In this document: piece by piece, positions 26,648 to 59,852 of the stretch | How positions within the stretch are numbered: position 1 is the stretch's first letter | How the letters are laid out: each line of letters starts with the position of its first letter | DNA from: Selaginella moellendorffii | Taxonomy: Eukaryota; Plantae; Lycopodiophyta | DNA length: 64,000 nt | Assembly: GCF_000143415.4 (NCBI RefSeq) | Contig: NW_003314319.1 | Span: 335,181-399,180 of the forward strand | Reading direction: 5' to 3' | Position numbers and translations under genes: made by a program | The notes under the pieces: generated by a model | What the model saw: the letters and a program-made list of their open reading frames with translations, nothing else | Told to the model about the DNA's origin: nothing | Database searches by the model: none

Positions 26648-27467
26648 ATCTCACAATCAAACTTGCCTAAAGCATTGGCCCACCAACCTTATTTCCCTCT
26701 TAAGTCGGGTTGTGATAACAAGTGTTTCATTGCCATATTATTCGTGTAAACTTTGAAGTGTCTCCCAAGGTAATGTCACCACTCCTTGAGTGTTTTGATC
26801 ACCGCAAATAATTTCTTCTCATGGGTAGGCCACTTTTGCTAAGCTTTCTTCAACTTCTTTGAGAAGAACATTATCTTGCTTCAAAACTGTGCCTAACGCA
26901 AAGTTTGAAGTATCCATTTCTACCTCAAAGTCTTTACCAAAGTTTAGTAATGCCAACACAGGAGCCTTCCTCAACTTCTTTTGAGATGGATAAATGCCAC
27001 CTCGCTGTCCATACCATTTTCCCTTTTCCTGTTTAGTCCATTAAAGGTAGGGGTATTTTTAAATAGTGTTTGAAAACTTTCAGTAGTAGTTACATAACCC
27101 TAACAATGCTCTTAATTTGTGTACATTCAATAGTTATTCCCATTCCTAGATCGCTTAGACCTTTTCAAGATCCACCTTGAGCCCATCTTTGCTTACCACA
27201 TGCCCAAGAAACTTTACCTCTTATTGAGAAAAGTTATATTTGTTCGTTTTAATATATAGTTGGTGTTCTTTTAATTTCTCAAACACCTTCGTCAAGTGTT
27301 CAACATGCTCTTCTAGCGTCTCGCTATAAATCAAGATATCTGTCAATGTAGATGACCACAAAATGCTTTAGGTAAAGTACAAAAATGTGGTTCATCAATG
27401 CCGAGAACGTTCCTAGTGCATTGCACAGCTTAAAGGGCATCATTAGAAACTCAAAACTTCCATTCTA
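26648..27467 (-). mobile_element. Gypsy RT/RNase H fragment at the junction of duplication blocks A and B
   Basis: Minus strand gives MPFxLCNA, VIYID and KFLGHVV; same family as the element at 34140-36000. Confidence 0.8.
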
Positions 27468-27850
27468 AATCTAAAATCGTATGTGTCAAATGATGTGTAA
27501 ACTTTCTCAAAGCTAGAGGTGCAAGTAGTAGCAGTGAAGGACCTTTCAGACAGACTCCACGTCTGGGAGCCATAGTGACGGACCATGACAGCATTGCTGG
27601 CTTAAGTGTTCCCATCAACACCATGCCCATGATGGTGTTTATCAGGTGAATCTCCCACTGTTTGTATGCGTTCTATATATGCTTTTGTTTATACAGGTCT
27701 GTGTTTCGTGCTTTGAGGGAGAGTGAGTGTGCCCGTGTACTCGGGCTGTTCCCGTACCTCCAAGTTTGGCACAACCTCAGCATGAGCCAGGCTACACCAT
27801 GTGCAATCGATGGATCTGATGAACCTCCGCGCCCAAAACCAAAACACTAA
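27468..27850 (+). pseudogene. 3' fragment of the deaminase-like gene
   Basis: Matches 49841-50214; lacks the N-terminus and the CAE motif; carries transition mutations. Confidence 0.85.
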
Positions 27851-29818: not shown

Positions 29819-31935
29819 CTAAATCACGAGTCCGCTTAACAGCTCGGTTCCCAATCTCAACTTGCCGAGGCTTCTGCAAGCCGCCAGCACGGCCCTCCAC
29901 ACCACAGCATCGCCCTCCACTGGAGAGCTTACCACGAAACGTACCATCTCCTCAAACTTCCCGGCTCGCCCTAGAAGATCGACCATGCACACGTAGTACT
30001 TCGCAGCGGGGGCGATCCCATAGTTGCTCCTCATCGACACAAAGCTGCAGTGAGCGTCCTAGAGCCCGGCGTGGCTACACGCCGAGAGGACGCTGACGAA
30101 GTTGATGGAGTTTGGCATGGTGTCGGATCCCATTTGCATCACTCGGAAGAGCGTGAGAGCTCGCACCGCGTGGCCGTGGCGATCGTAGGCTCCCACCATT
30201 GCACTCCAGGTTATCACGTCTTCTCTTCGCAGCTGGAAGAACAGCGTCCAGGCTCCCGTATTTGCTGTAGAGATTGAGCACTGCGTTGCCGAGTAGAACG
30301 TCCAGCTCCACTCCCCTCTCGCAAATCCAGCCGTGGACTCGCTTGCCATCTTTCAAGGAGGAGATCTCCGTGCAGGCAATGATAGCGTTTACGGAAGTGT
30401 GGTTGTTCATCCGGAATCCTTCTAACTGCATGTGTGAATCGAGTACGATTTTTCCATGCTGGTACTGTACGTAGATCGTGATCAAGGCTTTCCACGACGT
30501 CGCATCCTTGTGAGAGATCTTGGCGAAGGCTTCTCGTGCATCAAGCAAGCTCCCACACTTTGCAAACATGTTGACGAGCGCGTTCCCCACGATCTTGTTA
30601 GAGGAGTCATAGCCGGACTCCACGGTGAATCTGTCGGCCCCCGCGCAGAAACGCCGGGGACGAGCACGCATTGAGCGCCGCCAGGAGAGTTACGTTGTTC
30701 GGCCTCACGCTCTCTAGCTGCATGCGCCAAAGAAACACCATCCCCTGCAGTCCTTTTCCATTGCCTTGCTCCGCGAGAGCTGCAATGATCGACGACCAGG
30801 CGACTGCGTCTGGACAATCCATGCTCTGGAAAACTCTCCTCGATTCAAATGCGCTGCCACACCTCCCGGGAATACATGGTTATCAGCGTGTTTCCTACAA
30901 ATGGGACGCTCTGGAAGCCACACTCTTCGATCAAACCGTGGACAAAACATCCAGCCTTGAGGACGCCGCAAGCCTCTAAAACCGCCACGAAAGCTCATCT
31001 GGCTCGACACCATTGAGCAGCATCAGACAAAAACACTCGAGGGAAGACCTCGTTTCCTCGTGTTCTACGTAAGCGCTGATCATGGCAGACCATGCAAACT
31101 TGTTCTTGCAGCTCATCCGCTCAAAAATCTCTCGCGCTTCCGCAAGGCTGCCACACTTTGCATACATATGAACAAGGCTCGTTCCGGCTGTGACGTCCGT
31201 CTCATGGAGAACATCCTCCGGAAGACAAGAGTGAATGAGTCTGCCGGTCTTCAGGAACATTGGGCCGCAGCAAGCCTTGAGGAGTGTAACGAATCCGATT
31301 TTTCCAATCTTGACGCCCTCGAGCTGCATGACAAAGAGCATTTTCACTGCATCCGACTGATGCCCATTTTGGGCATATGCTGAAACAATGGCGTTCCAAG
31401 ACCCTGTGTTTCGGAAATACATTCTATCTAAGAAAGCTCTGGCTTGGTCGATTTGGCTGCATTTTCCATACATGTTGATAATCTCATTTGAGATTATCAC
31501 ATTCTTCTCCAGCCCACGATCCGCTATTATTTTGTGTACCACAATGCCCCCTGCGAGAGCGCCGTGTGTGGGGCAAAGATTGAGCGCTGGCAAGAGGGCG
31601 GTTTGATCCGGGAGAATTCCCTGCTCCTCCATCTCGTTCAGCAGGCCAACAGCCCCTCCGATTGATCCACATGAGCCGTGAGCCGTGATGAGCGCGCTCC
31701 ACGAGAGAGAGCTCCTCTTACTCGCGTCAAGGCTTTGGAACACAGCCTTGGCATCGTCCAAATGCCCGCACTTGCCATACATGTCGATGAGGTGATTCGC
31801 GAGACGCCCATCCCTTTCAAGGCGGCCCAGACGGGAGATATGGGCGTGGAGCTTCCTACCACCATCGACCAATCGCAGGGATGTGCAGGTGAGGAGGAGA
31901 TGGATGAGCTCTTCCGGCTCCAGGCGATCTGGCAA
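29819..31935 (-). pseudogene. PLS-class PPR (E-subclass) pseudogene
   Basis: LIDMYGKCG, SWNAIVSAYAQNG, FVSVLSACSHAGL, YVCMVDLLGRAG and E-motif WRAVLAAC; several frameshifts. Confidence 0.9.
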
Positions 31936-32395
31936 AGATTAAGGGCATACGAAAACAAAGAAGAGAAAGAAAAGGAATGTAGAGAGTATCAATCCTAGTG
32001 CCTCTCGCATGCTAATTGAGCGCTCTAGTAGACTTGGTGGTGAGATTTTCTCTTTGTCCCGAAAGTTTTCTCTCGCATCCTTGGAATCCTTCCATCTTTG
32101 CGATTTCTCTCTCCTTTTGCGATTTGTTTCTAAAACTTTCTTTTTTGCAGGTGCCACCCTTTGTTTTTCTCATCGTTTTGATTAACAATGGGGTCTACCT
32201 TTAGGAAAGATGCCGGAAAAATAAAGTAAATAACTGTTTTATCATCTGTCTTATTGAGAAACTATCCCAGGAAACATAGACAATTATTCAATGGGCGAGT
32301 TTGACTCTACATTTGAAATAATAACTCAAATGATATAAGGAGGAAATGAAAAACATAAAGAAAATGGCAATTTTTCTCCTCATTATCCTAGCAAC

Positions 32396-40270: not shown

Positions 40271-40448
40271 AGAATGGAGCTGTGGAGCATCCTGCCTTTG
40301 TAGAGATCTTTGGAGACGGTTCTCTCTTATAAAATAAGGCAAGGAGCTCGACCCTGGATCAGATCTTGCGAAACTGAGCTGCCTTGACAGGGGGATGGCG
40401 AGAAGATTTATTATTTGTATTATTTTATTTAGTTAACAGCTCGTTGGT

Positions 40449-41673
40449 TTAGTTTATTTGGAGCTTTTGTGAATGCTTGCCATCCAAATATTTTGTGTAG
40501 ACATTTGTGATGTGCTCTTGGTATAAGGTTGACTTGTAGAGTGGCGGGTTTTGCTCATCAATAAGTTCTGGCAGGGGTCCTATCACAGCATCCCGTGATG
40601 GATTGCAAAATGCCACGATGGAGAGACGAGTTTGATCAGGCTGGACAAGGACTCGGTGCTCAATGCTCTTGTATTTTCCATTGCTCAAAATCTGGCATGG
40701 AAAAGAACAAAGCCATGATAAAAATCAATCCAAGTCACTTACTTCAAGCTGATCAGCGATGTTCACAATGAATGCATTCTTTATAGGCTTCAAGTCGTAC
40801 CAGAGATCACCTTTCCTGGCCTGGAGTCCGCCAACTTGATCTTCAAACAGGATTGTCAAACCGCCACTATCGGTGTGGCCATTCATCCCAAGAGCAAGGT
40901 CGGGATTTGGGCACGGCGGATAGTAATTTGATCGCAAGATCATCTCCGAGTCTCCAAACGATTTTGCGAGGCAGTTTGAATCCAGCCCGAGTCCTTCAGA
41001 CAAAGCAGACATCAGAGTCTGACTCAGATGTCTCACGCTTGAAACATAGCTGGAAGCGAGCCTCCTGCAATATCCAAGAAACCAAGCAATCTCATGAAAT
41101 CCAGATTAGTCAAGCTCATTTACTTGTAGCAGGCTGGTTTTTCCGGCCATGGATGCTCTTTTTCTCTGTTTGAAAAGTAGTGCTGAAAGTGGTCGTGCCA
41201 CTCCATATGAGTCTCTTGAGAAGGTGTCATACTCGTGCAGTACCGCACGGGCACAAACACCTCCTCCGTATAATACTTCATCTTCTCCTCAATAGGAAGA
41301 TCAAAGAGCTCAAGCACTCCATGGACCATGCCTTGCATGGTTGCAACAGGAATCCCGTGGTTGATCACCTGCATGTGACATCATATTATGAATGATCCTT
41401 TTGAGCAGGTACACATCAAAATACCTGAAAGATGCCCCATTCACTCGAAGCCTTGCACAAAGTTTGAACAAATTTCTCTCGGTCACTCTCCAATGCAGCC
41501 ATGTCAATCACAGGGATCTCCACTCCAGGAACGATCAAATGCTTCACAGCTCGGTGGCTGGGAGGTTTGATATAACGGCCAGGAATGGTAACGAGGCCAT
41601 TATCCATGAGAGCTTTGACACCCTTTGGAAGAACATCAGTCTGCTGATTGACATTTGCAACAAAGGAAGGCAT
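40449..41673 (-). CDS. 2OG-Fe(II) dioxygenase, DOXC class, apparently intact 4-exon copy
   Basis: Mirror of 24746-25970 but keeps NYYPPCP; HTD/H/RLS motifs intact. Confidence 0.93.
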
Positions 41674-42202
41674 AGCTACAAAATTAGGAGGAAACAAGAT
41701 GAACGAGGTTGCATAGAATTGGTGGGTTTATATAGTTGATTTTTCATGATGTTAAAGTCCAAGTTGGTGGCCGCGAAAGACCTTCTTTCTAGGTGGCAGC
41801 CCACCTGGCCATCGCCTCAATTCCTTAAAACATCACGTCTTTTCTTTTTCGAGACTCTGGATAGTAAGCGACGAAGCCGGCAGCAGCAGCGAAGGAGGGA
41901 GCCGACATCGCGGCTTCGATTTTCTACATCCATCAGTCACAAGATTACCGAAATAACATAAATAGATAGTTGTAAGCATGAGACTGATGGATGCAAGAAT
42001 GCCACGATTGAAAATTAGAGCTACATCTTGCAGATCTTCCTGGTCTTCAGTCCTTGTTGTGCGCTGCTTGGACACAATTTCTTTCTGAAAGAGCCGGGTA
42101 GAAAAACTAAGACAGTGAATATGTTCTCTTTCGATTTGAATTTCTTCCTTTAAATATATATGCTCTCCACTCTTATTTCAATCTAAAGTTTAGCTTAGGA
42201 TC

Positions 42203-43869
42203 ATGGTTGGGACGATCAAACACCTCTACAACAGTCAATGGATGGTTGCATTGGCAAGTTTCTTCCTCATGATCTCCACGGGAGGAGCACTCAACAACTT
42301 CAGCCTCTTCTCGCAGCATCTCAAGCTGTCCCTCGACTACAACCAAAAAAATATCAACACCATAAGCTTATTTAAGGACGTTGGCACCAGCGTCGGGATT
42401 CTCTCCGGCCTCCTCTATGATCTCACCGGGCCCTGGGTCGTGCTCCTCCTTGGATTCGCGCTAAACTTTGCTGGATACTTCACGATATGGCTGGCTACAA
42501 CGCAGAGAATAGCACAACCCCATGTCTGGGAACTGTGCTTCTATCTCTTTATGATCGGCGCATCGGCAGCCTTCACCACCACCGCTGTTCTTGTGGCCTG
42601 TGCCAAGAATTTCCCCAAGAACCAGGGCATGGTTCTTAGTCTTCTCGACAGTACGCAGGGATTGAGCGTTGCGATGTTCACGCTGCTTTACCAGGCCTTT
42701 TTCTCTCGCAATGACGATTCATTCGTTCTCTTGCTGGCCTGGTTTCCATCACTCTTGTGCCTTCTCTTCGCGTTTTCCATTCGATCCGTCCCACTCGACG
42801 GTCGCTACAATGACTCGAGAACGCTCTTCGTCTTCTTGTCAGTAACTTTGATCCTGGCTGGATATCTCATGGCTATATCATCCTCCAGCACTTCGTGCGC
42901 CTAGAGTCTCGGATCATCAAGGCCTTCTTTTCCATTATGCTGATCATTCTCTCCATCCCAGTTCTTGTGGTTCTGAGACAGGAATCCAAAACCCTCCGGC
43001 ATCGCCTTCGCGAAGAAGTTGATGTTGATCTAGTGGAGAACGCAGCGATAGAAACTCCTCAAACAGATTATCAAGACGTAGATCCTCCGGATCATGGGGC
43101 AGACGCCGCTGCTCCAGCCATCGCCTCGCACATTTCGATCTTCTTCTTTAAAGGATCGCCCGTCAAGCGAGGAGACGATTTCACAATCCTCCAGGCGCTC
43201 TGTAGCATCGACATGTTTCTCATCTTCGTGGCTTCAACCTGTGGCATTGGCGCTGTGCTAACCGTGACCAACAATTTCGGCCAGATTGGAACGTCCCTTG
43301 GCTACTCCCAGGCCGGAACAAACACTTTCATCGCCCTCCTTAGCATCTGGGACTTCAACGGTGGCGTTGGCGTTGGCTTCATCTCGGACATATGCCTCGC
43401 CAGCTATGGCGTCGCAAGGCCCTTCTTCCTGTGCCTGGTTCTCTTGCTTCTGTCGCTTGGGAGCTTGATAATCGCTCTTGGGCTTCCCGGAGCGCTCTTC
43501 TACGGCTGGGTTTTGATTGGGCTGTCAATCGGTGGCCAGTGGTCGGTTCTTTACACCATGATAGCGGAGATCTTCGGGCTCAGGTTCTATGGGACGCTCC
43601 AAAATGTAACTTACGTCGCTAAGGCTCTGGGAACTTATGTTTTGTCCGTCCGGGTGGCAGGAGTTTTATACGACTGCGAGAGTAAGCTTGGACCGAGCAA
43701 TGGAAGTTTGGATGGTGATGAGCTCCTTTGCCATGGACCACATTGCTACAGAACAACCTTTTTCGTAATGGCTGGAGTGTGTTTGTTTGCATCCATTGTG
43801 AGCTTGATCTTGTCCATTAGAACAACAAAGTTTTATAGTGTCACTCTTCGAAAGAGATTAATTGATTAA
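42203..43869 (+). pseudogene. Nodulin-like MFS transporter, frameshifted (1-bp deletion near 42876)
   Basis: gctatatcatc versus intact gctattatcatc; same lesion as copy 1. Confidence 0.9.
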
Positions 43870-44679
43870 TAGATGTTAGCTGCTGAAATGAAAAGTAAAA
43901 CTTCTACAAGCTGCTGAAATGAATAGTAAACTTCTACGCATAATCCGATTAGCCTAAAAATTTTAGATTATATGCAATTACTCACTTGAGTTATTATTTT
44001 AAATGCAAAGTCAAACCAGCCCATCAATAGTTGATGTTTTATGGGATAATTTCTCAATAAGACAGATATTCATACACAAGAAAGACCATGAGATAAATCA
44101 TTTCTCTTGTATGCAATGGATATTAATATATATGATCAGAAAGGAAAAAATTGTAACAATCTTAAGCTTCATGATAATAAACTACATGAAAAATTAGAAA
44201 CTCAAAGAGTAAATAATAATTTAACTACTATAAAATAGAGAGAGCATATGCCCAAAGACAAATATAAATTTTTTTTACTTACACTAATGCTTTAGTTTTA
44301 AAGTAGCAATGTTTGGTTATAGTAGTGTCATTCCTGTTTAGTATTATTGAATAATCCAATGATAAACATATTTATAAATTATAATACAAAATTAATTTTA
44401 ATTAATAACAACTGTTACATGGATCCTAGACTATCCAAGCTATCCATTACCATTATAGGTTTGCTTAAGCAATCAAAAAAATAATCTAAAGTATTCAATT
44501 ATAATAATTTACAGTTGACAATTATAACAAATTTAATGGGTGACTCTTTCATTATAAATTTAGGTTGTAATAGCTAAAGGGCTATTTAATTTTACCATTA
44601 TCTAAGACTCTTATTTGATGTATATTTCATAATGACAATTTGGTTCCATTCTTCAGACAAAATCTATAAACAAAGTTCA

Positions 44680-45348
44680 TCATTGAAATTTCTGTTTGAA
44701 ATCACTCCACAACTGATCCACACTTTTTCTAATCAGATCCTGGAAGTAGCTTTCACTCCACCCGTCATAGAGCTTCTTGTTAAGCTCTGCCACAAAGCTA
44801 GGATGGAGATCGTTGACATAGTTTAGAAACAGTGCAGTCACGGTATACCCCTCGTCCCAGTGGCTCCCCAACCCCACAAACCCATTGGTCGACACACCTA
44901 GCTTAGCCTTGAGCCTCATAAAGTCGGCAATCCCCTCGATCAGTCCCTGCGGCGCCCGGCTCCCGTCCTTGCCGAACCACTGCCAAATGTGAGTCATCTC
45001 GTGGTACAAGACGCCTCGGAGCTCAAAAACCAAGTCTCCAGTGAAAGTAGCAACAAACTGTGCGCTGAGATGGATCTCCACACCAATGGCGTAGGCCACC
45101 CCAGGCATGCCGTCCACTGTGAAGTGGATGGTGTCAATCTCCTTCTTAGGTGTGTCGGGGCTCATATACTCGAAGCCAAGCTGGACGAAGGCCATGGCGT
45201 CGGCAAGGATGGAGAGGGCTCCATCTACTCCCATGACAGAGTCGAAGCGCTGGCCTCCCGGGGATTCTGGGGTTGTGTTGGCGCCTGTGATGGAGGTGCC
45301 TTGAGTTACCTGGAATGTTGCTAGGATAATGAGGAGAAAAATTGCCAT
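44680..45348 (-). CDS. Plant basic secretory protein (BSP/PR-17 family) with HExxH metallopeptidase-like motif
   Basis: Hydrophobic N-terminal signal MAIFLLIILATF; GVLYHEMTHIWQW; GLIEGIADFMRL; WDEGYTVTALFL; GKSVDQLW-type C-terminus. Confidence 0.93.
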   Translation of the reverse strand: MAIFLLIILATFQVTQGTSITGANTTPESPGGQRFDSVMGVDGALSILADAMAFVQLGFEYMSPDTPKKEIDTIHFTVDGMPGVAYAIGVEIHLSAQFVATFTGDLVFELRGVLYHEMTHIWQWFGKDGSRAPQGLIEGIADFMRLKAKLGVSTNGFVGLGSHWDEGYTVTALFLNYVNDLHPSFVAELNKKLYDGWSESYFQDLIRKSVDQLWSDFKQKFQ

Positions 45349-45755
45349 TTTCTTTATGTTTTTCTTTTCCTCCTTATATCATTTGAGTTATTATTTCAAA
45401 TGTAGAGTCAGTCTATGTTTCCTGGGATAGTTTCTCAATAAGACAGATGATAAAACAGTTATTTACTTTATTTTTCCGGCATCTTTCCTAAAGGTAGACC
45501 CCATTGTTAATCAAAACGATGAGAAAAACAAAGGGTGGCACCTGCAAAAAAGAAAGTTTTAGAAACAAATCGCAAAAGGAGAGAGAAATCGCAAAGATGG
45601 AAGGATTCCAAGGATGCGAGAGAAACTTTCGGGACAAAGAGAAAATCTCACCACCAAGTCTACTAGAGCGCTCAATTAGCATGCGAGAGGCACTAGGATT
45701 GATACTCTCTACATTCCTTTTCTTTCTCTTCTTTGTTTTCGTATGCCCTTAATCT

Positions 45756-47872
45756 TTGCCAGATCGCCTGGAGCCGGAAGAGCTCATCCATCTCCTCCTC
45801 ACCTGCACATCCCTGCGATTGGTCGATGGTGGTAGGAAGCTCCACGCCCATATCTCCCGTCTGGGCCGCCTTGAAAGGGATGGGCGTCTCGCGAATCACC
45901 TCATCGACATGTATGGCAAGTGCGGGCATTTGGACGATGCCAAGGCTGTGTTCCAAAGCCTTGACGCGAGTAAGAGGAGCTCTCTCTCGTGGAGCGCGCT
46001 CATCACGGCTCACGGCTCATGTGGATCAATCGGAGGGGCTGTTGGCCTGCTGAACGAGATGGAGGAGCAGGGAATTCTCCCGGATCAAACCGCCCTCTTG
46101 CCAGCGCTCAATCTTTGCCCCACACACGGCGCTCTCGCAGGGGGCATTGTGGTACACAAAATAATAGCGGATCGTGGGCTGGAGAAGAATGTGATAATCT
46201 CAAATGAGATTATCAACATGTATGGAAAATGCAGCCAAATCGACCAAGCCAGAGCTTTCTTAGATAGAATGTATTTCCGAAACACAGGGTCTTGGAACGC
46301 CATTGTTTCAGCATATGCCCAAAATGGGCATCAGTCGGATGCAGTGAAAATGCTCTTTGTCATGCAGCTCGAGGGCGTCAAGATTGGAAAAATCGGATTC
46401 GTTACACTCCTCAAGGCTTGCTGCGGCCCAATGTTCCTGAAGACCGGCAGACTCATTCACTCTTGTCTTCCGGAGGATGTTCTCCATGAGACGGACGTCA
46501 CAGCCGGAACGAGCCTTGTTCATATGTATGCAAAGTGTGGCAGCCTTGCGGAAGCGCGAGAGATTTTTGAGCGGATGAGCTGCAAGAACAAGTTTGCATG
46601 GTCTGCCATGATCAGCGCTTACGTAGAACACGAGGAAACGAGGTCTTCCCTCGAGTGTTTTTGTCTGATGCTGCTCAATGGTGTCGAGCCAGATGAGCTT
46701 TCGTGGCGGTTTTAGAGGCTTGCGGCGTCCTCAAGGCTGGATGTTTTGTCCACGGTTTGATCGAAGAGTGTGGCTTCCAGAGCGTCCCATTTGTAGGAAA
46801 CACGCTGATAACCATGTATTCCCGGGAGGTGTGGCAGCGCATTTGAATCGAGGAGAGTTTTCCAGAGCATGGATTGTCCAGACGCAGTCGCCTGGTCGTC
46901 GATCATTGCAGCTCTCGCGGAGCAAGGCAATGGAAAAGGACTGCAGGGGATGGTGTTTCTTTGGCGCATGCAGCTAGAGAGCGTGAGGCCGAACAACGTA
47001 ACTCTCCTGGCGGCGCTCAATGCGTGCTCGTCCCCGGCGTTTCTGCGCGGGGGCCGACAGATTCACCGTGGAGTCCGGCTATGACTCCTCTAACAAGATC
47101 GTGGGGAACGCGCTCGTCAACATGTTTGCAAAGTGTGGGAGCTTGCTTGATGCACGAGAAGCCTTCGCCAAGATCTCTCACAAGGATGCGACGTCGTGGA
47201 AAGCCTTGATCACGATCTACGTACAGTACCAGCATGGAAAAATCGTACTCGATTCACACATGCAGTTAGAAGGATTCCGGATGAACAACCACACTTCCGT
47301 AAACGCTATCATTGCCTGCACGGAGATCTCCTCCTTGAAAGATGGCAAGCGAGTCCACGGCTGGATTTGCGAGAGGGGAGTGGAGCTGGACGTTCTACTC
47401 GGCAACGCAGTGCTCAATCTCTACAGCAAATACGGGAGCCTGGACGCTGTTCTTCCAGCTGCGAAGAGAAGACGTGATAACCTGGAGTGCAATGGTGGGA
47501 GCCTACGATCGCCACGGCCACGCGGTGCGAGCTCTCACGCTCTTCCGAGTGATGCAAATGGGATCCGACACCATGCCAAACTCCATCAACTTCGTCAGCG
47601 TCCTCTCGGCGTGTAGCCACGCCGGGCTCTAGGACGCTCACTGCAGCTTTGTGTCGATGAGGAGCAACTATGGGATCGCCCCCGCTGCGAAGTACTACGT
47701 GTGCATGGTCGATCTTCTAGGGCGAGCCGGGAAGTTTGAGGAGATGGTACGTTTCGTGGTAAGCTCTCCAGTGGAGGGCGATGCTGTGGTGTGGAGGGCC
47801 GTGCTGGCGGCTTGCAGAAGCCTCGGCAAGTTGAGATTGGGAACCGAGCTGTTAAGCGGACTCGTGATTTAG
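45756..47872 (+). pseudogene. PLS-class PPR (E-subclass, no DYW) pseudogene
   Basis: Same as 29819-31935; frame breaks near 46700, 47065, 47445 and 47630. Confidence 0.9.
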
Positions 47873-49840
47873 AAAACAAGCGGAAAAGAGAAGATAAGCG
47901 AAGCAATCCTGACATACCCGGTATGAGAACGCCTGAGTTCCAACGTACGTAGAAGAGTTCCTCTTCTTCTTTTGCACGAGCATCCAGGTCTCTCTTGAAT
48001 TTAGTGCTATGGGGCCGTAAGTTTGCTGGATCTGCAAACAGCGTCAAGTCAGCGTGATCTTTCAACACAGTGCAACAAGACGAAACAAGTCATATCGTCT
48101 TCTATTTCAATACCAGGATGTCCTTGAGACTTGTCAGTTGACTGATCGCTGGGTCCGGTCCTTCTGCATCCATGCACCCTGGACGCTCTTTTAAGAAGAA
48201 CAAAGGAAGCAAGCTGGAAGCATTCACCAGAATTGCGGCATCGATTCCAGCTTCACTGAAAAGTGCTGTCTCTTTTCTTGCTTGATGGTCACCCATAGTT
48301 GCACCAGCACAGCAAGCTCCATGAGCAGCAAAGATCCTACAATCAGACGAATCCTGAGGAGCTTTACACTCAAGTCCACGAGAAATGCAGATAATTGAAG
48401 CACATACCAGTAGAGTGAGCTCGTGGGAGACAAGACCAGCCTTATTTTGTTGCCCGCATGAAGCGCAGATCTTGAAACGGTGACCCTTTGGGCAGGACAC
48501 GAAGGCACCCAGCATTGGACACAGCACAGCCGCTTCCAGCAGCACGAAGCCAAATGCAGCTACCTGGATCCGCCATATTCGAGATTTACAAGTCTGCTCG
48601 TTAAGCCCTAGGGATGGCAGGCTTCTCGTTCTCATTCGGATATTCGTTCCGGAGAGCCGGCTGCTGGTCTCGGCCTTGCCAGAACTAAAAGAGATACAGT
48701 TTATTTGAAAAGCCGAATGCAGCAGCGTCTGGGCTGAGGTTCGATTTCATCCAATTGTTTGCATATGTTTGTAACTTGACTTTCGATTTTCTCCAGGATC
48801 AAGACGCCTGAGAGTCGCTTGGCATCTCTATGTTCGCAGCAATTTCGAACCGGTTCGTGGGGCAAAGGCCAAGAAAGGCGTTCTCGAGCCAGCCGGATCC
48901 ACAGAGCTGTGACAGCTAGTGCTGAACAAAGGAATGGAGCATCTGGTGCATTGTCAATCCATACTGAAGAATCTCAATTGAGGCTATGGTGTTCCAGCTC
49001 CCCATTTAACCATGTCAATACCCTATAAAATCTCTCTCCTGATCTTGTTCCAGGGCACTGCAGCTGGCGGCACACCTAAGATTTTTGCGGATAGAACCGC
49101 CGGATTGCTTAACCCGGTTGGGAAAGAAGGCGTTTCAGCTTCAAATGGCACAGTTAAAAACGAGCATGGGTGCAGCCGGGTCCGGCAACGGTTCCTCATA
49201 TTGTAAATGCACTGAGACAGATATTACAGCAGCAGCAGTGAGCACATTTGGCTTCTGCTTCTCGAGCATCACGTACATATTAGTGCTGGGCCAGCATGTT
49301 TGTACAGGAGGCGGGTAGGATCTCCCAGGCATAGATATCCTTTGGGAACAAACAGAAGTCGTGTTGTACCGAACAGATCGACCATGCAGAACTAATTCGG
49401 TTGAATGTGGATGTCGGCTGTCATACTTTGGAAGGTTTCTCAGGCGGCTGCAACAGGCGCACAAAGACCATAGCATCCCTTCCCTTGGAAGATTAATACA
49501 GCTTCAGCCAGGGCATAGCATGAGAATGGTCTAGGAAGAGGTTACAAGCCAGCATGGTTCGTATGCTGCCAGCATTGCATTTGCAGTCTACATTTTCCGT
49601 AACTTGCTTGCTCTGAGCGTAGCCACCTGACATGCTGCATTGTCGAATTCTCCACAGCGATTCACATACAGAGTTTCCATTATTTTTATCTGCAACCAAA
49701 TTTCCAGGTTCGTTTTGATGATTTGATTTTTTGGAGAGAGCGTGACCAAGGAATAATCAAGGAAATTTATCTAGGACAGCTTATATACTTATTAACTTCA
49801 CACGTTTCCTTATGGAATTAATACCACACCATATACGCAA

Positions 49841-50722
49841 TTAGTGTTTTGGTTTTGGGCGCGGAGGTTCATCAGATCCATCGATTGCACATGGTGTAGC
49901 CTGGCTCATGCTGAGGTCGTGCCAAACTTGGAGGTACGGGAACAGCCCGAGTACACGGGCACGCTCACTCTCCCTCAAAGCGCGAAACACAGACCTGTAT
50001 AAACAAAAGCATATATAGAACGCGTACAAACAGCACCTGATAAACACCATCACGGGCATGGTGTTGATGGGAACACTTAAGCCAGCGATGCTGTCATGGT
50101 CCGTCACTATGGCTCCCAGACGTGGAGTCTGTCCGAATGGTCCTCCACTGCTACTACTTGCACCTCCAGCTTTGAGACAGTTTACACATCGTTTGACGCA
50201 CACGACATTAGATTCGCCTTTCTTCTTCTGGTGCTTCTGCACGGCGTAAGTTGTATCAGCCGACTCATTCAATCGTGCCAGCTTCTCGAATACAACATGC
50301 TCCGCACAGTTCTCGAAGTCGCGGCCCTTACTGGGTTTGGCCTCTTTATCCTCGTCGAGAAGTGCCAAGTGGAGCCTGGAATGGGTGTCATCATCAAAAG
50401 CTGAGACTTGAACTCCCAGCCTCTTCTCCACATCCTTGATGCTTACTGGATTTGGTCTACCCCCTGCCATGTCCATCCTCAAACGAACGTTAGCACCCAC
50501 AACTCTTGTTCCTTGTTCCGTGACTCCACAGCACAGCACATCGCTCACTTGCCCCTTCTTTGCATGCTCAATAGGAGCCTGGCGAACCAACATCCCCAAG
50601 TGCAAAATGCGCAGGAAATGGATGAATGCGTCCCCATCGCTGAGACCTGGAATACCTTGCAATGCATTCCACAGCTTTTGAGCATCGGCAAGGTTCACCT
50701 GCTCAGAATCCTTTGAGGCCAT
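49841..50722 (-). CDS. Orphan protein with putative Zn-dependent cytidine-deaminase-like fold (probable start MASK at 50722; probable in-frame 42-nt intron 49995-50036)
   Basis: Uninterrupted 328-codon ORF; VLCCGVTEQGTRVVGAN, NCAEHVVFEKL and KRCVNC occur in deaminase order. Confidence 0.65.
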   Translation of the reverse strand: MASKDSEQVNLADAQKLWNALQGIPGLSDGDAFIHFLRILHLGMLVRQAPIEHAKKGQVSDVLCCGVTEQGTRVVGANVRLRMDMAGGRPNPVSIKDVEKRLGVQVSAFDDDTHSRLHLALLDEDKEAKPSKGRDFENCAEHVVFEKLARLNESADTTYAVQKHQKKKGESNVVCVKRCVNCLKAGGASSSSGGPFGQTPRLGAIVTDHDSIAGLSVPINTMPVMVFIRCCLYAFYICFCLYRSVFRALRESERARVLGLFPYLQVWHDLSMSQATPCAIDGSDEPPRPKPKH

Positions 50723-51463
50723 GGCTTTTTGAGAAACGCCGTCCTGCTGAAGGTTATTTATCACATGACTAGCCGGCGATTGTACAGGGAGGGAGAAAAA
50801 TAAAAAGAAATGTTTGACACGTTCCATCAGAAAGCTATTATGTCACGCTTGAAGTTGTGATGGCGATTGAGGCCTCCAACTTGTCAGTCTATGATCTACT
50901 TCTTTAGTTCAGCGTCTCTGACTGTCCGGAAAGGTCGCGTGCTACGATGCTCCACTCAGTTTTGTGCCAATGACAAATAAAAACTTTTAACTCATGTGCT
51001 TACCCTAGTCCTCAATGTGAGCTGTTTGACTGCAATGCTTAGCATGATCGATCTAGCTTTAAGTTCGTCAGCTGGATTTTGGAGAGGCAAAGACGGAACC
51101 TTTCTCACGTTAAACGCACCTCTAAATCTTGAAATGCTGGGCAGACCTTGAATGAGCTTCGAAAAATTTCTAGTACCTGTTTTTGCTAATGCTCACTCTT
51201 TGAAGCTTGCACTTCTCCTCTTTGTTTATCATTTCCTTTTCCTTTTGAACTTGCCGTGCATTAGTTTCCTGAAATCTGTGGTAAGTGAATAGCAAACCTT
51301 GGTTTTCTATATGCCAGGCCCTTCTTGCCCAATCTTGGTTTCTTTTTCTTTGGTGCAGAAACACCAGATCTGCTCTTTGAGTCTCCATCTTCCGCTCCCA
51401 CGAGACCAGCAACATCTCGTCAAAATCGACATAACCACAAATGTCAATTGTCACTGGCCATGT

Positions 51464-51467
<4 letters not shown>

Positions 51468-51505
<38 letters not shown>
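51468..51505. repeat. (CT)n microsatellite
   Basis: About 19 perfect CT units. Confidence 0.95.
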
Positions 51506-51506
<1 letters not shown>

Positions 51507-51769
51507 GTGTCTTCCTCTAACAACAGCAACGACCACTTTGTGAGTACCTCACTGCTACCCCAAACCTGCACGATGTGCTTGCCATCGTTGAACCCGTCCT
51601 CAACTCCACACTAGTGGTAGATAGGATGGTCTGATGCATCTTTCGTGGGTCCTCATGACATGAAATAGCTGTTATTATTATTATATGGCAACTGTAGATG
51701 TTCAACGCCCCAGGGTCAGTATAATCAATCTACGCTGTCCAGGCTATATATTGTTATTGCAGCCCTCCA

Positions 51770-52185
51770 GGGGCTTTCTATCCGGCATCTATTGAGTTCG
51801 TTGTTGCTTGTTGTCTCCAGTGTGAGTTTGTGAAGGTAATGGCTGGTTCGCCACTGTCCTCAAGGCTCTCAATGTTGGAGAGGAGCTGACTACGAATGAA
51901 GTGCTTGTGTCCCCAAACGCGCGCTACAAGGCTTGCTCTTGCTCATGAGCAATGACGGCGATGTCATAGCAAGCAGTAAGAAGGTTGGAAACGCAGTGGT
52001 GGCTATTATTTACCACTGCATGAGGACGCCACTTTTAGTATCGAAAAGAATGGTGGCAATGTTGTGCTGTGGTAGAATGGGATTAGCCAGGTGGAAGGAC
52101 CTCAATATCAGCTGGTTGTTACCAATGATCCCAAGCTCTATGTCATGGTTGGTGGCAAAACTGTGAACATCATTCTGGAATGAGT
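51770..52185 (+). pseudogene. Bulb-type (B-) lectin domain pseudogene
   Basis: LNVGEELTTNEVLVSPNARY / LLMSNDGDV / LPLHEDATFSIEKNGGNVVLW* / YQLVVTND across frameshifts. Confidence 0.6.
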
Positions 52186-53519
52186 GCCTGACTCGAATAT
52201 GTGTATGTACTTTGGGCAATGTCAAGATCTCGACATTGCAGATATCTGAATAAATTTGGACGTTTACATATATATGGTCTACCTTTTCTTTTCGTTGCTG
52301 GCCAAGATCAGCACAAAAGAGAAGAAATCTTCAGGTATGGCCTCTGCATGTACTCTTCAATATTTTGTTTATTTATTCCTTCACTACGATCTGCTCATAT
52401 CTAGGCAGCAGGGGGAACAACCACTGCTTGGATGTTGGACATTAGTTTCGGGACTGGGTTGCTCCAAGCATCACTCTAGACTATGGCGCTCGATCGAGGT
52501 TTGGACATGGCACTAGATGCAGAGCTCTAGACTATGGCGAGGAAGAGACGGACATTTTTCCATTCCATCTCAGTTAGAAACCACATGCCTATTCATCTAG
52601 AATAGAATTGGAACAACTCCTGGTCATTTCAGAAATAGAGGCAACGAGAGTCAATAGCTATCTCAATCGATTTCACCAGAGTAGCCAGACCTGGAGACCA
52701 TCCCCGTTAAGGAGATAATGCTACACTGAGACCGTTGGCCCCAAGGATAGAATTGAGTTTTGTCACCCATATCACAAATTAAGTTTCAGTGCGCCGTTTT
52801 GGATTCAGACAAACTGCCTAGAGTTTCGAGATCAAGGATCTGAGCTTGCATCACCATGCTTACATCGGAATTTAAATAGAATCAAAACACCGTGTACCTG
52901 AGAGTTCAAGGGTCGGGATGAGAAACGTTTTGACTGCCCTCCGCGCCCTCAGATGTCAGACTCCAGTTGCTTCAGAACGCACTGAATTTACGTGAAGAGC
53001 TGCATCAAACTTAAACGTTGGTTAAGTATAACCTGAAAGCTCGTCGCAATATTTGAACACGTATTAAATTAAAGAAGAGCGGGCCAAGGAGCTACCGACT
53101 GCTTGACTGGTGATCAAACATGTTGTTATAAGCTTTCAAAGGTTACTGGCCAATTGCAAGGCTATGGCGAGGAAGAGACGACGCTATTGTTCCATATCTA
53201 CAGAGGGTGTGAATCCACACACACTCACACACATACGCTGTTAATTGAAAGAGGTTGTTTCTTCTTTTTTCTTTTGGAAGCTAAGCATTAACTGACTGTA
53301 GCAATTGAAGCATTTTTTGTCATTAAAATCTTTAAGAGATATACAGTAGGTTGGCAATAAAACACAGATGTCCTTTGCCACTGGCCATGTGAAGCTTAGA
53401 TGTCTGATGTTACCTCCTTGGTTGCTTTGGTGTATGACAGTACACACTTCACCCACTGACACCGATGTTCAATATCATGTGGTTTTTTTCTTTAAAATAA
53501 TCCTCACTATCACTTGGCA

Positions 53520-54340
53520 ATACTAGGTTGATCATGTCTGATTTATCGTACAATTATTTGTCGGGGAAGATTCCATCGACCTTGGGTAACTGCCCGAGGC
53601 TACAGTCACTCGATCTCACTCCAAGGAAAGATCCCGGAGTCTGGGCCAGCCCTCCATGCTGCAAAGTCTTTCTCTTGATGTGAACTTACTTGATGGTGAG
53701 ATTCCCTCGAGCCTAGCACGGTGCTCAAGGCTTGAGAAGCTTTCCTGCTGTGGCAATCGTCTCACTGACCTTCTTGGGACAGTTCCATACCAAGGGACTT
53801 TGTGAATCTCTCAAATTCCTGGAAGAGGAATGACATCGAAGGAGAAGTTCCAACTTTTCTCTTTGCGCACGAGGGTCTTGTGGGTTTTACGCCTTGCTGC
53901 GAACAAGTTGGAATCATTTAGCTACGATTTCCAGGCCGATGGAGTCGTATGGAGGTTCTGGAACTACGCTTCAACCAGATAACAGGCAGCATTCCATCGC
54001 AAGACTTCAGCTACTTGCCAGGTTTTTGAAGCTCATCTCCTCATCCCAGGAATGAAATTTGAGCGCGTTGACAAACTTTGACGTGGCATTCAACATGCTG
54101 CATGGGAAGTTCCTGTTTCTTTGTCCTTGTGCGTCAACATGAGCCACATTGACATGGGCGTGAAAAATTTCAGTGGCCAGTTTCCGCCGGAAATTTCCAA
54201 GCTTGAGCAGCTTCAGTTCTTTCTTATTTCGACCAACAAGCTGGGAACCTTGGCACTTTGGATCTCGCGAGAAATAACCTCTGGAACCTGACGAGCATCA
54301 GCAAGTGATTTGTCCTCGAACTCAATACCATCTCGCCTTG
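53520..54340 (+). pseudogene. LRR receptor-like protein/kinase pseudogene
   Basis: LSYNYLSGKIPSTLGNCPRLQSLDL, LDVNLLDGEIPSSLARC and FNQITGSIPS; multiple frameshifts. Confidence 0.8.
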
Positions 54341-54469
54341 GAAAGCTAAACCAGTTCTCGGGAGAAATAATGTTTAACTATTATAATTTAGTTATTTAAG
54401 TAGACATAATACAAATTGACAGAAATTTAAGAGATTTGTTCTTGTTAGCTTAGTTGTAAATTTGATGTT

Positions 54470-55060: not shown

Positions 55061-55191
55061 TATAAATTATAAATATGTTTATAATTATCAATCAATTAAA
55101 TTATTCAACAATACTAAACATAATTATTACGTATTTACTAATGCAAAAGCTTTATAGTGAGTGGCCTTATAGACATTTCGGCAGCTAACAT

Positions 55192-56862
55192 CTATTTACC
55201 AGTTAGTCTCTTTTGAAGAGTGATGCTATAAAACTTTGTTGTTCTAATGGACAATATCAAGCTCACAACGGATGCAAACAAGCACACTCCAGCCATGACG
55301 AAGAAGGTTGTTCTGTAGCAATGTGGTCCATGGCAAAGGAGTTCATCACCATCCAAACTTCCATCGCTTGGTCCAAGCTTACTCTCGCGGTCGTATAAAA
55401 CTCCTGCCACCTGGACGGACAAAACATAAGTTCCCAGCGCCTTAGCGACGTAAGTTACGTTTTGGAGCGTCCCATAGAACCTGAGCCCGAAGATCTCCGC
55501 TATCATGGTGTAAAGAACAGACCACTGGCCACCGATTGACAGCCCAATCAAAACCGAGCCGTAGAAGAGCGCTCCGGGAAGCCCAAGAGCGATTATCAAG
55601 CTCCCAAGCGAGAGAAGCAAGAGAACCATGCACAGGAAGAAGGGCCTTGCGACGCCATAGCTGGCGAGGCATATGTCTGAGATGAAGCCAACGCCAACGC
55701 CACCGATGAAGTCCCAGATGCTAAGGAGGGCGATGAAAGTGTTTGTTCCGGCCTGGGAGTAGCCAAGGGACGTTCCAATCTGGCCGAAATTGTTGGTCAC
55801 GGTTAGCACAGCGCCAATGCCACAGGTTGAAGCCACGAAGATGAGAAACATGTCGATGCTACAGAGCGCCTGGAGGATTGTGAAATCGTCTCCTCGCTTG
55901 ACGGGCGATCCTTTAAAGAAGAAGATCGAAATGTGCGAGGCGATAGCTGGAGCAGCGGCGTCTGCTCCATGATCCGGAGGATCTACGTCTTGATAATCTA
56001 TTTGAGGAGTTTCTATCGCTGCGTTCTCCATTAGATCAACATCAACTTCTTCGCGATGGCGATGCCGGAGGGTTTTGGATTCCTGTCTCAGAACCACAAG
56101 AGCTGGGATGGAGAGAATGATCAGCATAATGGAAAAGAAGGCCTTGATGATCCGAGATTCTAGGCGCACGAAATGCTGGAGGATGATAATAGCCATGAGA
56201 TATCCAGCCAGGATCAAAGTTACTGACAAGAAGACGAAGAGCGTTCTCGAGTCATTGTAGCGGCCGTCGAGTGGGACGGATCGAATGACAAACGCGAATA
56301 GAAGGCACAAGAGTGATGGAAACCAGGCCAGCAAGAGAACGAATGAATCGTCACTGCGAGAGAAGAAGGCCTGGTAAAGCAGCGTGAACATCGCAACGCT
56401 CAATCCCTGCGTACTGTCGAGAAGACTAAGAACCATGCCCTGGTTTTTGGGGAAATTCTTGGCACAGGCCACAAGAACAGCGGTAGTGGTGAAGGCTGCC
56501 GATGCGCCGATCATAAAGAGATAGAAACAGAGTTCCCAGACATGGGGATGGGCGATTCTCTGCGTTGTAGCCAGCCATATCGTGAAGTATCCAGCAAAGT
56601 TTAGCGCGAATCCAAGGAGGAGCACGACCCAGGGCCCGGTGAGATCATAGAGGAGGCCGGAGAGAATCCCGACGCTGGTGCCAACGTCCTTAAAGAAGCT
56701 TATGGTGTTGATATTCTTTTGGTTGTAGTCGAGGGACAGCTTGAGATGCTGCGAGAAGAGGCTGAAATTGTTGAGTGATCCTCCAGAAGAGATCATGAGG
56801 AAGAAACTTGCCAATGCAACCATCCATCGACTGTTGTAGAGGTGTTTGATGGTCCCAACCAT
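55192..56862 (-). CDS. Nodulin-like / NFD4-like major facilitator superfamily transporter, intact and intronless, 556 aa
   Basis: KDVGTSVGILSG, NFPKNQG, GDDFTILQALCSID, NFGQIGTSLGY and CHGPHCY; many hydrophobic segments. Confidence 0.93.
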   Translation of the reverse strand: MVGTIKHLYNSRWMVALASFFLMISSGGSLNNFSLFSQHLKLSLDYNQKNINTISFFKDVGTSVGILSGLLYDLTGPWVVLLLGFALNFAGYFTIWLATTQRIAHPHVWELCFYLFMIGASAAFTTTAVLVACAKNFPKNQGMVLSLLDSTQGLSVAMFTLLYQAFFSRSDDSFVLLLAWFPSLLCLLFAFVIRSVPLDGRYNDSRTLFVFLSVTLILAGYLMAIIILQHFVRLESRIIKAFFSIMLIILSIPALVVLRQESKTLRHRHREEVDVDLMENAAIETPQIDYQDVDPPDHGADAAAPAIASHISIFFFKGSPVKRGDDFTILQALCSIDMFLIFVASTCGIGAVLTVTNNFGQIGTSLGYSQAGTNTFIALLSIWDFIGGVGVGFISDICLASYGVARPFFLCMVLLLLSLGSLIIALGLPGALFYGSVLIGLSIGGQWSVLYTMIAEIFGLRFYGTLQNVTYVAKALGTYVLSVQVAGVLYDRESKLGPSDGSLDGDELLCHGPHCYRTTFFVMAGVCLFASVVSLILSIRTTKFYSITLQKRLTGK

Positions 56863-57309
56863 GATCCTAAGCTAAACTTTAGATTGAAATAAGAGTGGAG
56901 AGCCTATATTTAAAGTATGGATAGTTTTTCTACCTGGCCCTTCCAGAAAGAAAATGTGTCCAAGCGGCGCACAACAACGAGGAAGGTCTCTGGCATTTCT
57001 GCATCCATCAGTCTCATGCTTGACAGCTATCTATTTAGGTTATGTCGATAATCTCGTGACTGATGGATGTAGAAAATCGAAGCCGCGATGTCTCCTTCGC
57101 TGCTGCTGCCGGCTTTGTCGCTTACTATCCAGAGTCTCGAAAAAGAAAAGACGTGACGTGTTAAGGAATTGAGGTGGTGGCCACGTGGGCTGCCACCTAG
57201 AAAGAAGATCTTTCGCGGCCACCAACTTGGACTTTAACATCATGAAAAATCAACTATATAAACCCACCAATTCTATGCAATCTCGTTCATCTTATTTCCT
57301 CTTAATTTT

Positions 57310-59157
57310 GTAGCTTCCTTTGTTGCAAATGCCAATCAGCAGACTGATGTTCTTCCAAAGGGTGTCAAAGCTCTTATGGATAATGGCCTCGTTACCATTC
57401 CTGGCCGTTATATCAAACCTCCCAGCCACCGAGCTGTGAAGCATTTGATCATTCCCGGAGTGGAGATCCCTGTGATTGACATGGCTGCATTGGAGAGTGA
57501 CCGAGAGAAATTTGTTCAAACTTTGTGCAAGGCTTCAAGTGAATGGGGCATCTTTCAGGTATTTTGATGTGTACCTGCTCAAAAGGATCATTCATAATAT
57601 GATGTCACATGCAGGCTCTTAGGCAAGGCCGACTAATTCTGTTTGAATCCTATCCCTTACACCCTAAGCCAACTGGCTAAAGGGGTGATCACTTGATTGT
57701 AGGGCTCTTTCTTTATCCTATTATCCTGACCTGGTGCCTAACAATCCTCCCCCTCGTCAAGGATCGTCCGCGATCATATTTATGCCACCATCCGGTCACC
57801 ATGGTTCTTCTCTTAGGGTCTACCAAACTTTGGTTCTCCCTCTAGATCCACTATGTTGAATATTTCTTTAGAATATTCCTGCCCCACTCGTCAGCCACGA
57901 GAATCGAACTGAGCTCCGATACCAATGTTAGGATTCTATCCCTTACACCCTAAGCCAACTGGCTAAAAGGGTGATCACTTGATTGCAGGGCCCTTTCTTT
58001 ATCCTATTATCCTGACCTGGTGCCTAACACATTTACTCTTTCTTGCTCGAGGGCCTGGGAGCGGAAGATCACTCGCAACACCACCTCAAAGTTAGGATAT
58101 GCATCACTGATGGAGATCGAAACCACAATATGTTGCCGATCAACCATGGGATTCCTGTTGCAACCATGCAAGGCATGGTCCATGGAGTGCTTGAGCTCTT
58201 TGATCTTCCTATTGAGGGAATTTATATGTTCACAATTAAGAAAAATTATATTTAAAATTTTTTATTTTTTATTTCATCAAGACTTTTGAATTTTAAAATC
58301 TTATATACATATATTTATAAAAGAGAAGATGAAGTATTATACGGAGGAGGTGTTTGTGCCTGTGCGGTACTGCATGAGTATGACACCTTCTCAAGAGACT
58401 CATATGGAGTGGCACGATCACTTTCAACACTACTTTTCAAACAGAGAAAAAGAGCATCCATGGCCGAAAAAACCAGCCTGCTACAAGTAAATGAGCTTGA
58501 CTAATCTGGATTTCATGAGATTGCTTGGTTTCTTGGATATTGCAGGAGGCTCGCTTCCAGCTATGTTTCAAGTGTGAGCCATCTGAGCCTCTGATGTCTG
58601 CTTTGTCTGAAGGACTTGGGCTGGATTCAAACCGCCTCGTGAAATCATTTGGAGACTCGGAGATGATCTTGCGATCAAATTACTATCTGCCGTGCCCAAA
58701 TCCCGACCTTGCTCTTGGGATGAATGGCCACACTGATAGTGGCGGTTTGACAATCCTGTTTGAAGATCAAGTTGGCGGACTCCAGGCCAGGAAAGGTGAT
58801 CTCTGGTACGACTTGAAGCCTATAAAAAATGCATTCATTGTGAACATTGCTGATCAGCTTGAAGTAAGTGACTTGGATTGATTTTTATCATGGCTTTGTT
58901 CTTTTCCATGCCAGATTTTGAGCAATGGAAAATACAAGAGCATTGAGCACCGAGTCCTTGTCCAGCCTGATCAAACTCGTCTCTCCATCGTGGCATTTTG
59001 CAATCCATCGCGGGATGCTGTGATAGGACCCCTGCCAGAACTTATTGATGAGCAAAACCCGCCACTCTACAAGTCAACCTTATACCAAGAGCACATCACA
59101 AATGTCTACACAAAATATTTGGATGGCAAGCATTCACAAAAGCTCCAAATAAAATAA
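57310..59157 (+). pseudogene. 2ODD copy 3, inactivated
   Basis: ATGCCT deleted at the start; insertion 57616-58137 containing a TRIM; ~105-bp AT-rich insertion near 58218-58322; small frameshifting deletion near 58588; YYLPCP. Confidence 0.9.
57640..58029 (-). mobile_element. TRIM (terminal-repeat retrotransposon in miniature), 390 bp
   Basis: 104-bp TG..CA LTRs 57640-57743 and 57926-58029; PPT 57744-57754; tRNA-Met PBS 57913-57924 (TGGTATCGGAGC); non-coding interior. Confidence 0.92.
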
Positions 59158-59289
59158 ACCGCTCTGGACAACAAGCTGTTACTAAAATAAAATAATAGAA
59201 AGAATAAATCTTCTATTTTATAAGAGAGAACTGTCTCCAAAGATCTCTACAAAGGCAGGATGCTCCACAACTCCATTCTTGCTTCCAAT

Positions 59290-59852
59290 CTTTGCTGTTG
59301 CTAGTTCATTTGGTGTTCATGTACATGGAACTACAGCAGGCTTGGAGATCTTCAATGTCTACTAGCTTGAAAGATCTATTGTGTTCCCAAACTCTCCAAG
59401 CCGAGACACCCAATTATCACATCGAAGACCCTTCAGGCATCTGTGAAGCTTTGCAATTATAGAGATTAGTGATGCATGGAAGAGATCCTATCTCCAGAGG
59501 CCCTGGAAGCGCCAAAGTGAAGCAAGTCCAAGACTGCATTGGTGGACAAGTCCACGACTGAGGCAACCCAACCATGGATCAACAGTACTAGTTGTCTATA
59601 TGAATTGTTTGGCATCACTTGGCCACCTCATCATGCTGGATCTCAGCAACAATTCACTCTTTGCCATAATCCCTGGATCACTGGGTGATATTCCAATGCT
59701 ATGGACAACCTTGATGCTCAACTAAATCTTCAAGATCTTCAACAAGGAGCTTCCAAAATTTCTGGAGAGGTCATTGCCATCCACTTCCTCAAAACTAGCT
59801 AGTTGCTTTTTGTTTTTGGTTTGCTGCTCTATCTTCCAAGATTTTGCATAGG
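59290..59852 (+). pseudogene. LRR relic, copy 3
   Basis: Homologous to 26150-26647 and 39708-40270. Confidence 0.6.

Follow-up and report, generated by a model that had tools for sequence, protein, structure and literature searches.

The deaminase superfamily has repeatedly yielded editing and mutator enzymes, including AID/APOBEC, ADAR, DYW and the fungal OLD proteins, and, among plants, RNA editing is at its most extreme in lycophytes and ferns. The gene described here, LOC112351202, lies in a 64,000-nucleotide stretch of the genome of the lycophyte Selaginella moellendorffii (contig NW_003314319.1, forward-strand positions 335,181 to 399,180; hereafter the window, whose own numbering is used throughout). 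We think that its product, annotated as "uncharacterized" in RefSeq, is probably an active zinc deaminase of a new, very divergent clade with the cytidine deaminase (CDA) fold, so far found only in lycophytes and ferns.

Our comparison with described clades relies on the table of synapomorphies in Iyer et al. 2011 (PMC3239186). The clade of CDD/CDA and blasticidin-S deaminase (BSD) enzymes (PDB 3oj6, 3b8f, 3dmo) resembles our family in carrying CAE in helix 2, with a cysteine as the first zinc ligand. A CxE motif is also permitted in the YwqJ-like toxin deaminases (PF14431; PMC3239186). The OTT_1508-like deaminases (PF14441), which include the fungal OLD proteins, have a sporadic eukaryotic range that extends to Selaginella, where a strongly divergent member, SELMODRAFT_427619, has been listed (Iyer et al. 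2011, PMC3239186). Fungal OTT_1508 versions carry a helical insert before helix 2, and the Helix-4 division that contains OTT_1508 is typified by HxE (PMC3239186); the fungal OLD proteins are described with an HxE...CxxC catalytic motif (PMC12754623). The DYW domains of PPR editing factors are, like our family, present in plants with extreme organellar editing, and a DYW-less PPR gene adjoins the near-identical copies of our gene. DYW domains are marked by HxE(K), a second metal site with CxC/DYW at the C terminus and a PPR/E array upstream; our family has CxE, no PPR repeats and no match to DYW_deaminase. As it fits none of the described clades, we treat the family as a new one. It may have been listed before, as SELMODRAFT_427619, a locus tag other than those found for the family.

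LOC112351202 is encoded on the minus strand (50722..50037 joined to 49994..49841), as are all the protein segments located below. Exon 1 of the coding sequence (50037..50722) supplies residues 1-229, including the first two bases of codon 229; a 42-nt, phase-2 GT..AG intron follows (49995..50036), and exon 2 (49841..49994) runs through residue 279 to a TAA stop. With the intron removed, the 279-residue product is identical to RefSeq XP_024544391.1, exactly as an earlier note on this DNA, made from the letters alone, had predicted with its spliced protein of about 279 residues. The enclosing open reading frame (ORF; minus strand, 49841..50827, 328 codons) offers an in-frame ATG at 50827, but translation starts at 50722, as the earlier note had it: the sequence around this site (AAAAAGCCATGG) is favourable, and the upstream ATG lies beyond the end of the longest RNA contig, at 50787. 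The short protein is supported by RefSeq models of 279-281 residues and by an RNA contig end about 109 nt past the stop, whereas the 2010 GenBank models of three paralogous loci, SELMODRAFT_448059, 445532 and 442274 (L001, L003 and L004), splice beyond the true stop into downstream non-coding DNA and reach 338-635 residues. The 5′ leader of the window copy also contains a start-stop mini upstream ORF (ATG TGA, 50761-50766, minus strand), whose ATG is missing in the L004 copy and which is probably without significance. Some 700 nt upstream of the gene, at 51459-51514, is a (GA/TC)n microsatellite.

Expression and splicing, which the earlier note had set as a check, are both observed. Contigs of four runs from four different studies were placed on window positions 48800..51800; the run type (RNA) is a guess, and we read the contigs as transcripts because they are spliced and show sharp, gene-sized coverage. 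Every run (4/4) yields a gene-covering contig. The longest spliced contig, with adapters at both its ends, gives the maximum span and delimits a transcribed region of 49732..50787 on the minus strand, within which the contigs of the other three runs fall. Exactly 42 nt, bounded by GT..AG on the gene's strand, are skipped in contigs of all four studies. The contigs bear single-nucleotide polymorphisms private to L001, L003 and L004, and in two runs exon 2 is identical to that of the window copy; several copies are therefore expressed. Because assemblers merge near-identical paralogues, expression of the window copy itself is no more than likely.

The evidence for a deaminase fold comes from structure prediction and from the placement of the motifs within it. 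The AlphaFold2 (AF2) model of the Selaginella protein (pLDDT 73.6, pTM 0.75) begins with a helical hairpin, followed by a hairpin of two strands and then by an insert of about 55 residues that is partly helical and poorly modelled. A helix starts at CAE, a long strand extended by a hairpin comes next, and after a further helix, which starts at CxxC, the chain closes with a short strand and C-terminal helices. The N-terminal helical hairpin (residues 4-47; 50582..50713) is modelled at pLDDT 94-97, and its second helix corresponds to deaminase core helix 1; the VIA alignments begin at residues 19-33. Strands 1 and 2 pair as a hairpin at residues 59-77 (50492..50548), with V59, V67 and G76 invariant, and the VLCC...GAN segment occupies residues 62-78. 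The insert before helix 2 (residues 79-134; 50321..50488) has low model confidence and contains the invariant residues L81, R82, A108, R116 and L117.

The two motifs follow. C139-A-E141 (50300..50308), the proposed first zinc ligand and catalytic glutamate, stands at the N terminus of helix 2 (140-150), and R178-C179-x-x-C182 (50177..50191), with the proposed second and third zinc ligands, stands at the N terminus of helix 3 (180-186). Between them, residues 155-175 (50198..50260) comprise strand 3, with TYAVQ at 158-162, and a β-hairpin extension of variable length (163-175), as placed by the alignment and the AF2 model. Strand 4 (203-205) opens a G..VTD ... VP segment (residues 203-218; 50069..50116) in which G203, V206, T207, D208, V217 and P218 are invariant; its VTD (206-208)...[L]-x-V-P (218) is conserved, a helix (222-237) follows, and the hydrophobic residue is not aromatic, unlike that of the a-x-x-P which, with a polar residue, marks the extended loop from strand 4 to helix 4 in the OTT_1508-like deaminases. 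The earlier note had placed NCAE at 50311..50300 and RCVNC at 50191..50177, together with the hairpin and TYAVQ, and all of these were borne out.

Several searches with these predictions converge on deaminases. The best 50 Foldseek matches in the PDB are all cytidine or blasticidin-S deaminases, at weak E-values of 0.03-0.4. An ESM Atlas shape search with the AF2 model returned PF00383 on 7 of the 10 rows shown, the rest being one RHS-repeat cluster and two unnamed ones. The Atlas single-sequence model of a homologue from Diphasiastrum matches YwqJ/RHS (TM 0.56 over 142 residues) and dCMP_cyt_deam_1 (TM 0.6-0.68). By language-model features, the nearest named families are the YwqJ (0.85), MsddA-like and OTT_1508 deaminases. 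In the AF2 model and in a second one, CxE opens helix 2 (140-150 and 152-162, respectively), CxxC opens helix 3 and strand 3 lies between, as expected of the superfamily, which has [H/C/D]xE and CxxC at the N termini of these helices, and the predicted core order is helix 1-strand 1-strand 2-helix 2-strand 3-helix 3-strand 4 in a three-layer α/β fold. The fold searches thus back the signature that had been read from the letters, a CDA fold with cysteine ligands (CxE and CxxC) and of non-DYW type. The family probably belongs on the C-terminal-hairpin side of the superfamily or is truncated after strand 4.

Conservation gives these motifs further weight. C139, E141, C179 and C182 are kept in all 11 homologues, at identities down to 30%, which is the outcome that the earlier note had sought from its conservation check. 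The alignments contain 30-31 invariant columns, including these four residues and R178. Of the protein's cysteines, C139, C179 and C182 never change, and the other four (64, 65, 175 and 264) vary; since the invariant motif residues include the only invariant cysteines, the signature is more than chance. The first motif is C139-[AS]-E141, which reads CAE except for CSE in one member, and the second is R-C-x-[NK]-C, with no preceding proline and no conserved arginine after it. Five arginines are invariant (R47, R82, R116, R150 and R178). The family consensus after strand 2 is G-[AV]-[NS]-[VS]-x-L-R, and the G-x-N strand end that had been proposed as part of the signature is not conserved: the asparagine occurs only in the near-identical S. 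moellendorffii copies, with serine elsewhere.

An exhaustive phmmer search of 1.84 billion representatives matched only nine proteins, comprising Selaginella genes, one Diphasiastrum complanatum protein, two from Adiantum capillus-veneris and three transcriptome sequences; one of the A. capillus-veneris matches shares its 90% cluster with a protein of Adiantum nelumboides. In the A. nelumboides model (623 residues), the deaminase-like domain continues into a C-terminal extension of about 330 residues, which may reflect either a genuine fusion or the merging of gene models. A maximum-likelihood tree resolves two subfamilies (support 100/98), each with a lycophyte and a fern, and because both subfamilies hold both lineages, the distribution fits an old duplication with vertical descent and loss in seed plants. 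The gene had been called an orphan; with homologues in Selaginella, Diphasiastrum and Adiantum, in two old subfamilies, and at least four near-identical copies in S. moellendorffii, it is not one. Neither phmmer nor pattern scans of JGI metagenome contigs and of 185,579 bacterial and archaeal genomes detected a bacterial, archaeal, metagenomic or fungal relative by sequence, and word-index protein searches with the alignment and with a divergent paralogue added no members, with SELMODRAFT_427619 not among the matches.

That divergent paralogue is a fifth S. moellendorffii gene, SELMODRAFT_430527, about 40% identical, whose intron lies at the homologous place, following the residues ...[F/Y]-I-R. 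An intron position common to paralogues this distant, and the lack of any bacterial, fungal or metagenomic relative by sequence, speak against the suggestion of horizontal acquisition made in the earlier note. The closer copies, about 97-99% identical, comprise that of the window and three more, on scaffolds GL377674, GL377623 (the window's own scaffold) and GL377588. Among the four intact copies there are 24 exon differences, 12 in synonymous and 12 in non-synonymous codons over 188 and 646 sites, respectively, which amounts to a dN/dS of about 0.3 (pairwise 0.16-0.58) and a significant synonymous excess (binomial P = 0.003). The single exon indel among them is in frame (6 nt inserted in exon 2 of L003), whereas the flanks contain many indels. 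By this comparison, which the earlier note had proposed, the gene is under purifying selection. The intron (window 49995-50036, compared with L001/L003/L004 around 10687-10740) is 42 nt long in the window copy and 51 nt in the three others, owing to a 9-nt indel beside the 5′ splice site.

Several observations weigh against an active deaminase. Pfam, NCBIfam and PADLOC scans, with single members and with the alignment, gave no deaminase match; PDB sequence and profile searches returned nothing relevant; and hhalign gave a probability of 0.2%, both with E. coli Cdd and with a seven-CDA profile built from plasmid records. The model also has no strand 5, and the putative zinc binding, catalysis, substrate and cellular location are all things that we infer. 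When the threshold was relaxed, the hhalign alignment was colinear over the hairpin, CxE and CxxC, and the geometry of the zinc site would follow from the canonical secondary-structure register.

If the protein works as other members of the superfamily do, Cys139, Cys179 and Cys182 would hold a zinc ion that activates water, Glu141 would act as a proton shuttle, and a base, in all likelihood cytosine, would lose its exocyclic amino group by hydrolysis. The invariance of the glutamate argues for catalysis over a purely structural zinc. From sequence, we favour a phosphate-bearing substrate, either nucleic acid or nucleotide, over a free nucleoside, because the ribose-binding N-x-E is not conserved and five arginines are invariant. 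The single-domain protein, of about 280 residues, is probably cytosolic or nuclear; an organellar editing role seems unlikely because the N terminus is acidic and no member has an extension. A more specific proposal, which we put forward only tentatively, is that these proteins form a nucleo-cytosolic RNA or DNA base deaminase family of seed-free vascular plants that predates the lycophyte-fern split and was lost in seed plants, has remote look-alikes in Ascomycota, and may serve nuclear transcript editing or defend against viruses and transposons by mutagenesis.

The same fold could instead belong to a small-molecule deaminase of the cytidine or blasticidin type, acting in salvage or in the detoxification of microbial aminonucleosides. 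This reading draws on the best structural matches, which are blasticidin-S deaminase and tetrameric CDAs, on the CxE motif shared with CDA and BSD, and on the small, single-domain architecture with no recognisable nucleic-acid-binding module. However, PCxxCR, the terminal glutamate of strand 5 and the N-x-E ribose contacts (definitions: PMC3239186) are all absent. Where the clade has PCxxCR, our family has RCxxC; where G-[AC]-N-[VIM]-E follows strand 2 in 7 of 7 aligned bacterial CDAs, it lacks N-x-E; and in place of the strand-5 E-L-L-P found in 5 of the 7 (L-P in 7/7), it has x-V-P with a variable residue before. Relative to CDD/CDA and BSD enzymes, the family adds an N-terminal helix, the insert of about 55 residues before helix 2, the hairpin ahead of CxxC and C-terminal helices, making it twice the size, with no detectable sequence or profile similarity. 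The large inserts cap the pocket, and several arginines are invariant. We consider a small-molecule substrate rather unlikely.

It is unlikely that the gene is identical to the already listed SELMODRAFT_427619 and hence kin to the fungal OLD proteins, which are A-to-I antiviral editors. A divergent OTT_1508-like deaminase has indeed been named in S. moellendorffii (PMC3239186), both groups have a conserved loop after strand 4, with x-x-P, OTT_1508_deam is among the named language-model matches at 0.75-0.76, and a Selaginella and a Diphasiastrum member have in common two unnamed Ascomycota clusters as their nearest language-model neighbours (0.92-0.93, 184-192 shared features). Against this, the tag SELMODRAFT_427619 differs from all the family tags found (448059, 445532, 442274 and 430527), none of these four is cited in the literature, and a locus-tag search returned Iyer et al. 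2011 only. PF14441 matches no member even at E <= 10; the conserved GxxK before CxxC is replaced by the invariant R178; the family has CxE where fungal OLD proteins and the Helix-4 division have HxE (PMC12754623, PMC3239186); and the best structural matches come from the C-terminal-hairpin division, not that of OTT_1508.

Decidedly unlikely, in our view, is a domesticated toxin, that is, a YwqJ-like deaminase that moved from a bacterium or fungus into an early vascular plant and now serves defence against viruses or transposons. YwqJ/RHS and PAAR-linked toxin deaminases come out as the nearest named clusters, whether judged from language-model features or from the Atlas model for the Diphasiastrum homologue, the two inserts (residues 79-134 and the hairpin at 163-175) are common to both groups, and the patchy phyletic range and recent gene-family expansion would suit such a history. 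Yet the YwqJ signatures are lacking: there is no Gx[CH]xE, as the residue two before the cysteine is E, Q or K, with glycine in one sequence only; the insert has no invariant histidine; and the PF14431 model gives no match. This intron-bearing eukaryotic gene has no toxin-delivery domains and no immunity neighbour. Relatives by sequence are missing from bacteria, archaea, metagenomes and fungi, the presence of a fern and a lycophyte in each of two subfamilies and the old intron position both fit vertical descent, and a segmental duplication of several genes, not expansion of the deaminase-like gene alone, accounts for the copy number.

That the protein is no enzyme, with cysteines for structural zinc or disulfides, a catalysis-dead deaminase-like fold or a motif-driven fold prediction, is quite improbable: it would accord with the missing statistical sequence link to deaminases, the modest model confidence and shallow alignments, and the inactive deaminase-fold domains common in the superfamily (PMC3239186), but a structural zinc does not need Glu141, which is invariant across lycophytes and ferns, three prediction routes give the same fold, and the motifs lie at the canonical helix N termini.

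The copies of the gene sit in a segmental duplication of about 14 kb, which blastn finds on three scaffolds at about 94-96% identity. The block shared by all copies contains the deaminase-like gene, a PPR gene, a BSP gene (PR-17 family), a Nodulin-like MFS transporter and a 2OG oxygenase. In the window, blastn delimits three block copies, of which one is full (54369..40401), another rearranged (21009..32395) and the third partial (55174..59768); one in-window block copy is inverted and permuted. Inside the rearranged block, on the plus strand, is a pseudogene fragment of the deaminase-like gene (27452..27847; blastn block from 27468) that covers only residues 165-279, 76% identical as read through (tblastn), and so retains the 3′ part with CxxC and lacks CxE. 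As the copies sit in a multi-gene segmental duplication, we rejected the idea that the gene is transposon-borne. The window also contains ORFs of a Ty3/gypsy-type long terminal repeat retrotransposon (7479-10937, minus strand), one with gag, a zinc knuckle and an aspartic protease and the other an integrase with an SH3-like C terminus.

Directly downstream of the deaminase-like gene comes the PPR gene. Its ORFs, 319 residues each with identical Pfam scores, lie one per duplicate block at 45756-46715 (plus strand) and 30976-31935 (minus strand), and neither these ORFs nor the PPR gene models at the paralogous loci showed a DYW deaminase domain. We did not adopt the idea that the deaminase-like protein acts in trans for this DYW-less PPR protein, as the two adjoin only in recent duplicates and not at the locus of the divergent paralogue; it is further weakened because the deaminase-like protein has no apparent organelle-targeting extension. 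The earlier note had described a setting of defence-type genes, of which the BSP (PR-17) gene is present, whereas no lectin or leucine-rich repeat domains were found in the larger ORFs of the neighbourhood, and a defence role is unsupported. It had also held that the gene stays open while most of its neighbours are pseudogenes; the gene is intact, but so are the ORFs of the BSP and MFS genes. Because the neighbourhood is conserved only among recent duplicates, it gives no clue to function.

What emerges is a conserved and expressed clade missed by every sequence-profile method that we tried, including HMM libraries and hhalign, and new deaminase clades are raw material for base editors. If the substrate is a small molecule, the protein would be a lineage-specific salvage or detoxification enzyme of modest interest. 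If these proteins act on nucleic acids, they would be the first candidates for a non-DYW editing or mutator deaminase in plants. As nucleo-cytosolic enzymes, they would then be to plants what AID/APOBEC or the fungal OLD proteins are to their own lineages, and they would offer base editors a new scaffold. In either case, a testable annotation can now take the place of "uncharacterized protein" in RefSeq.
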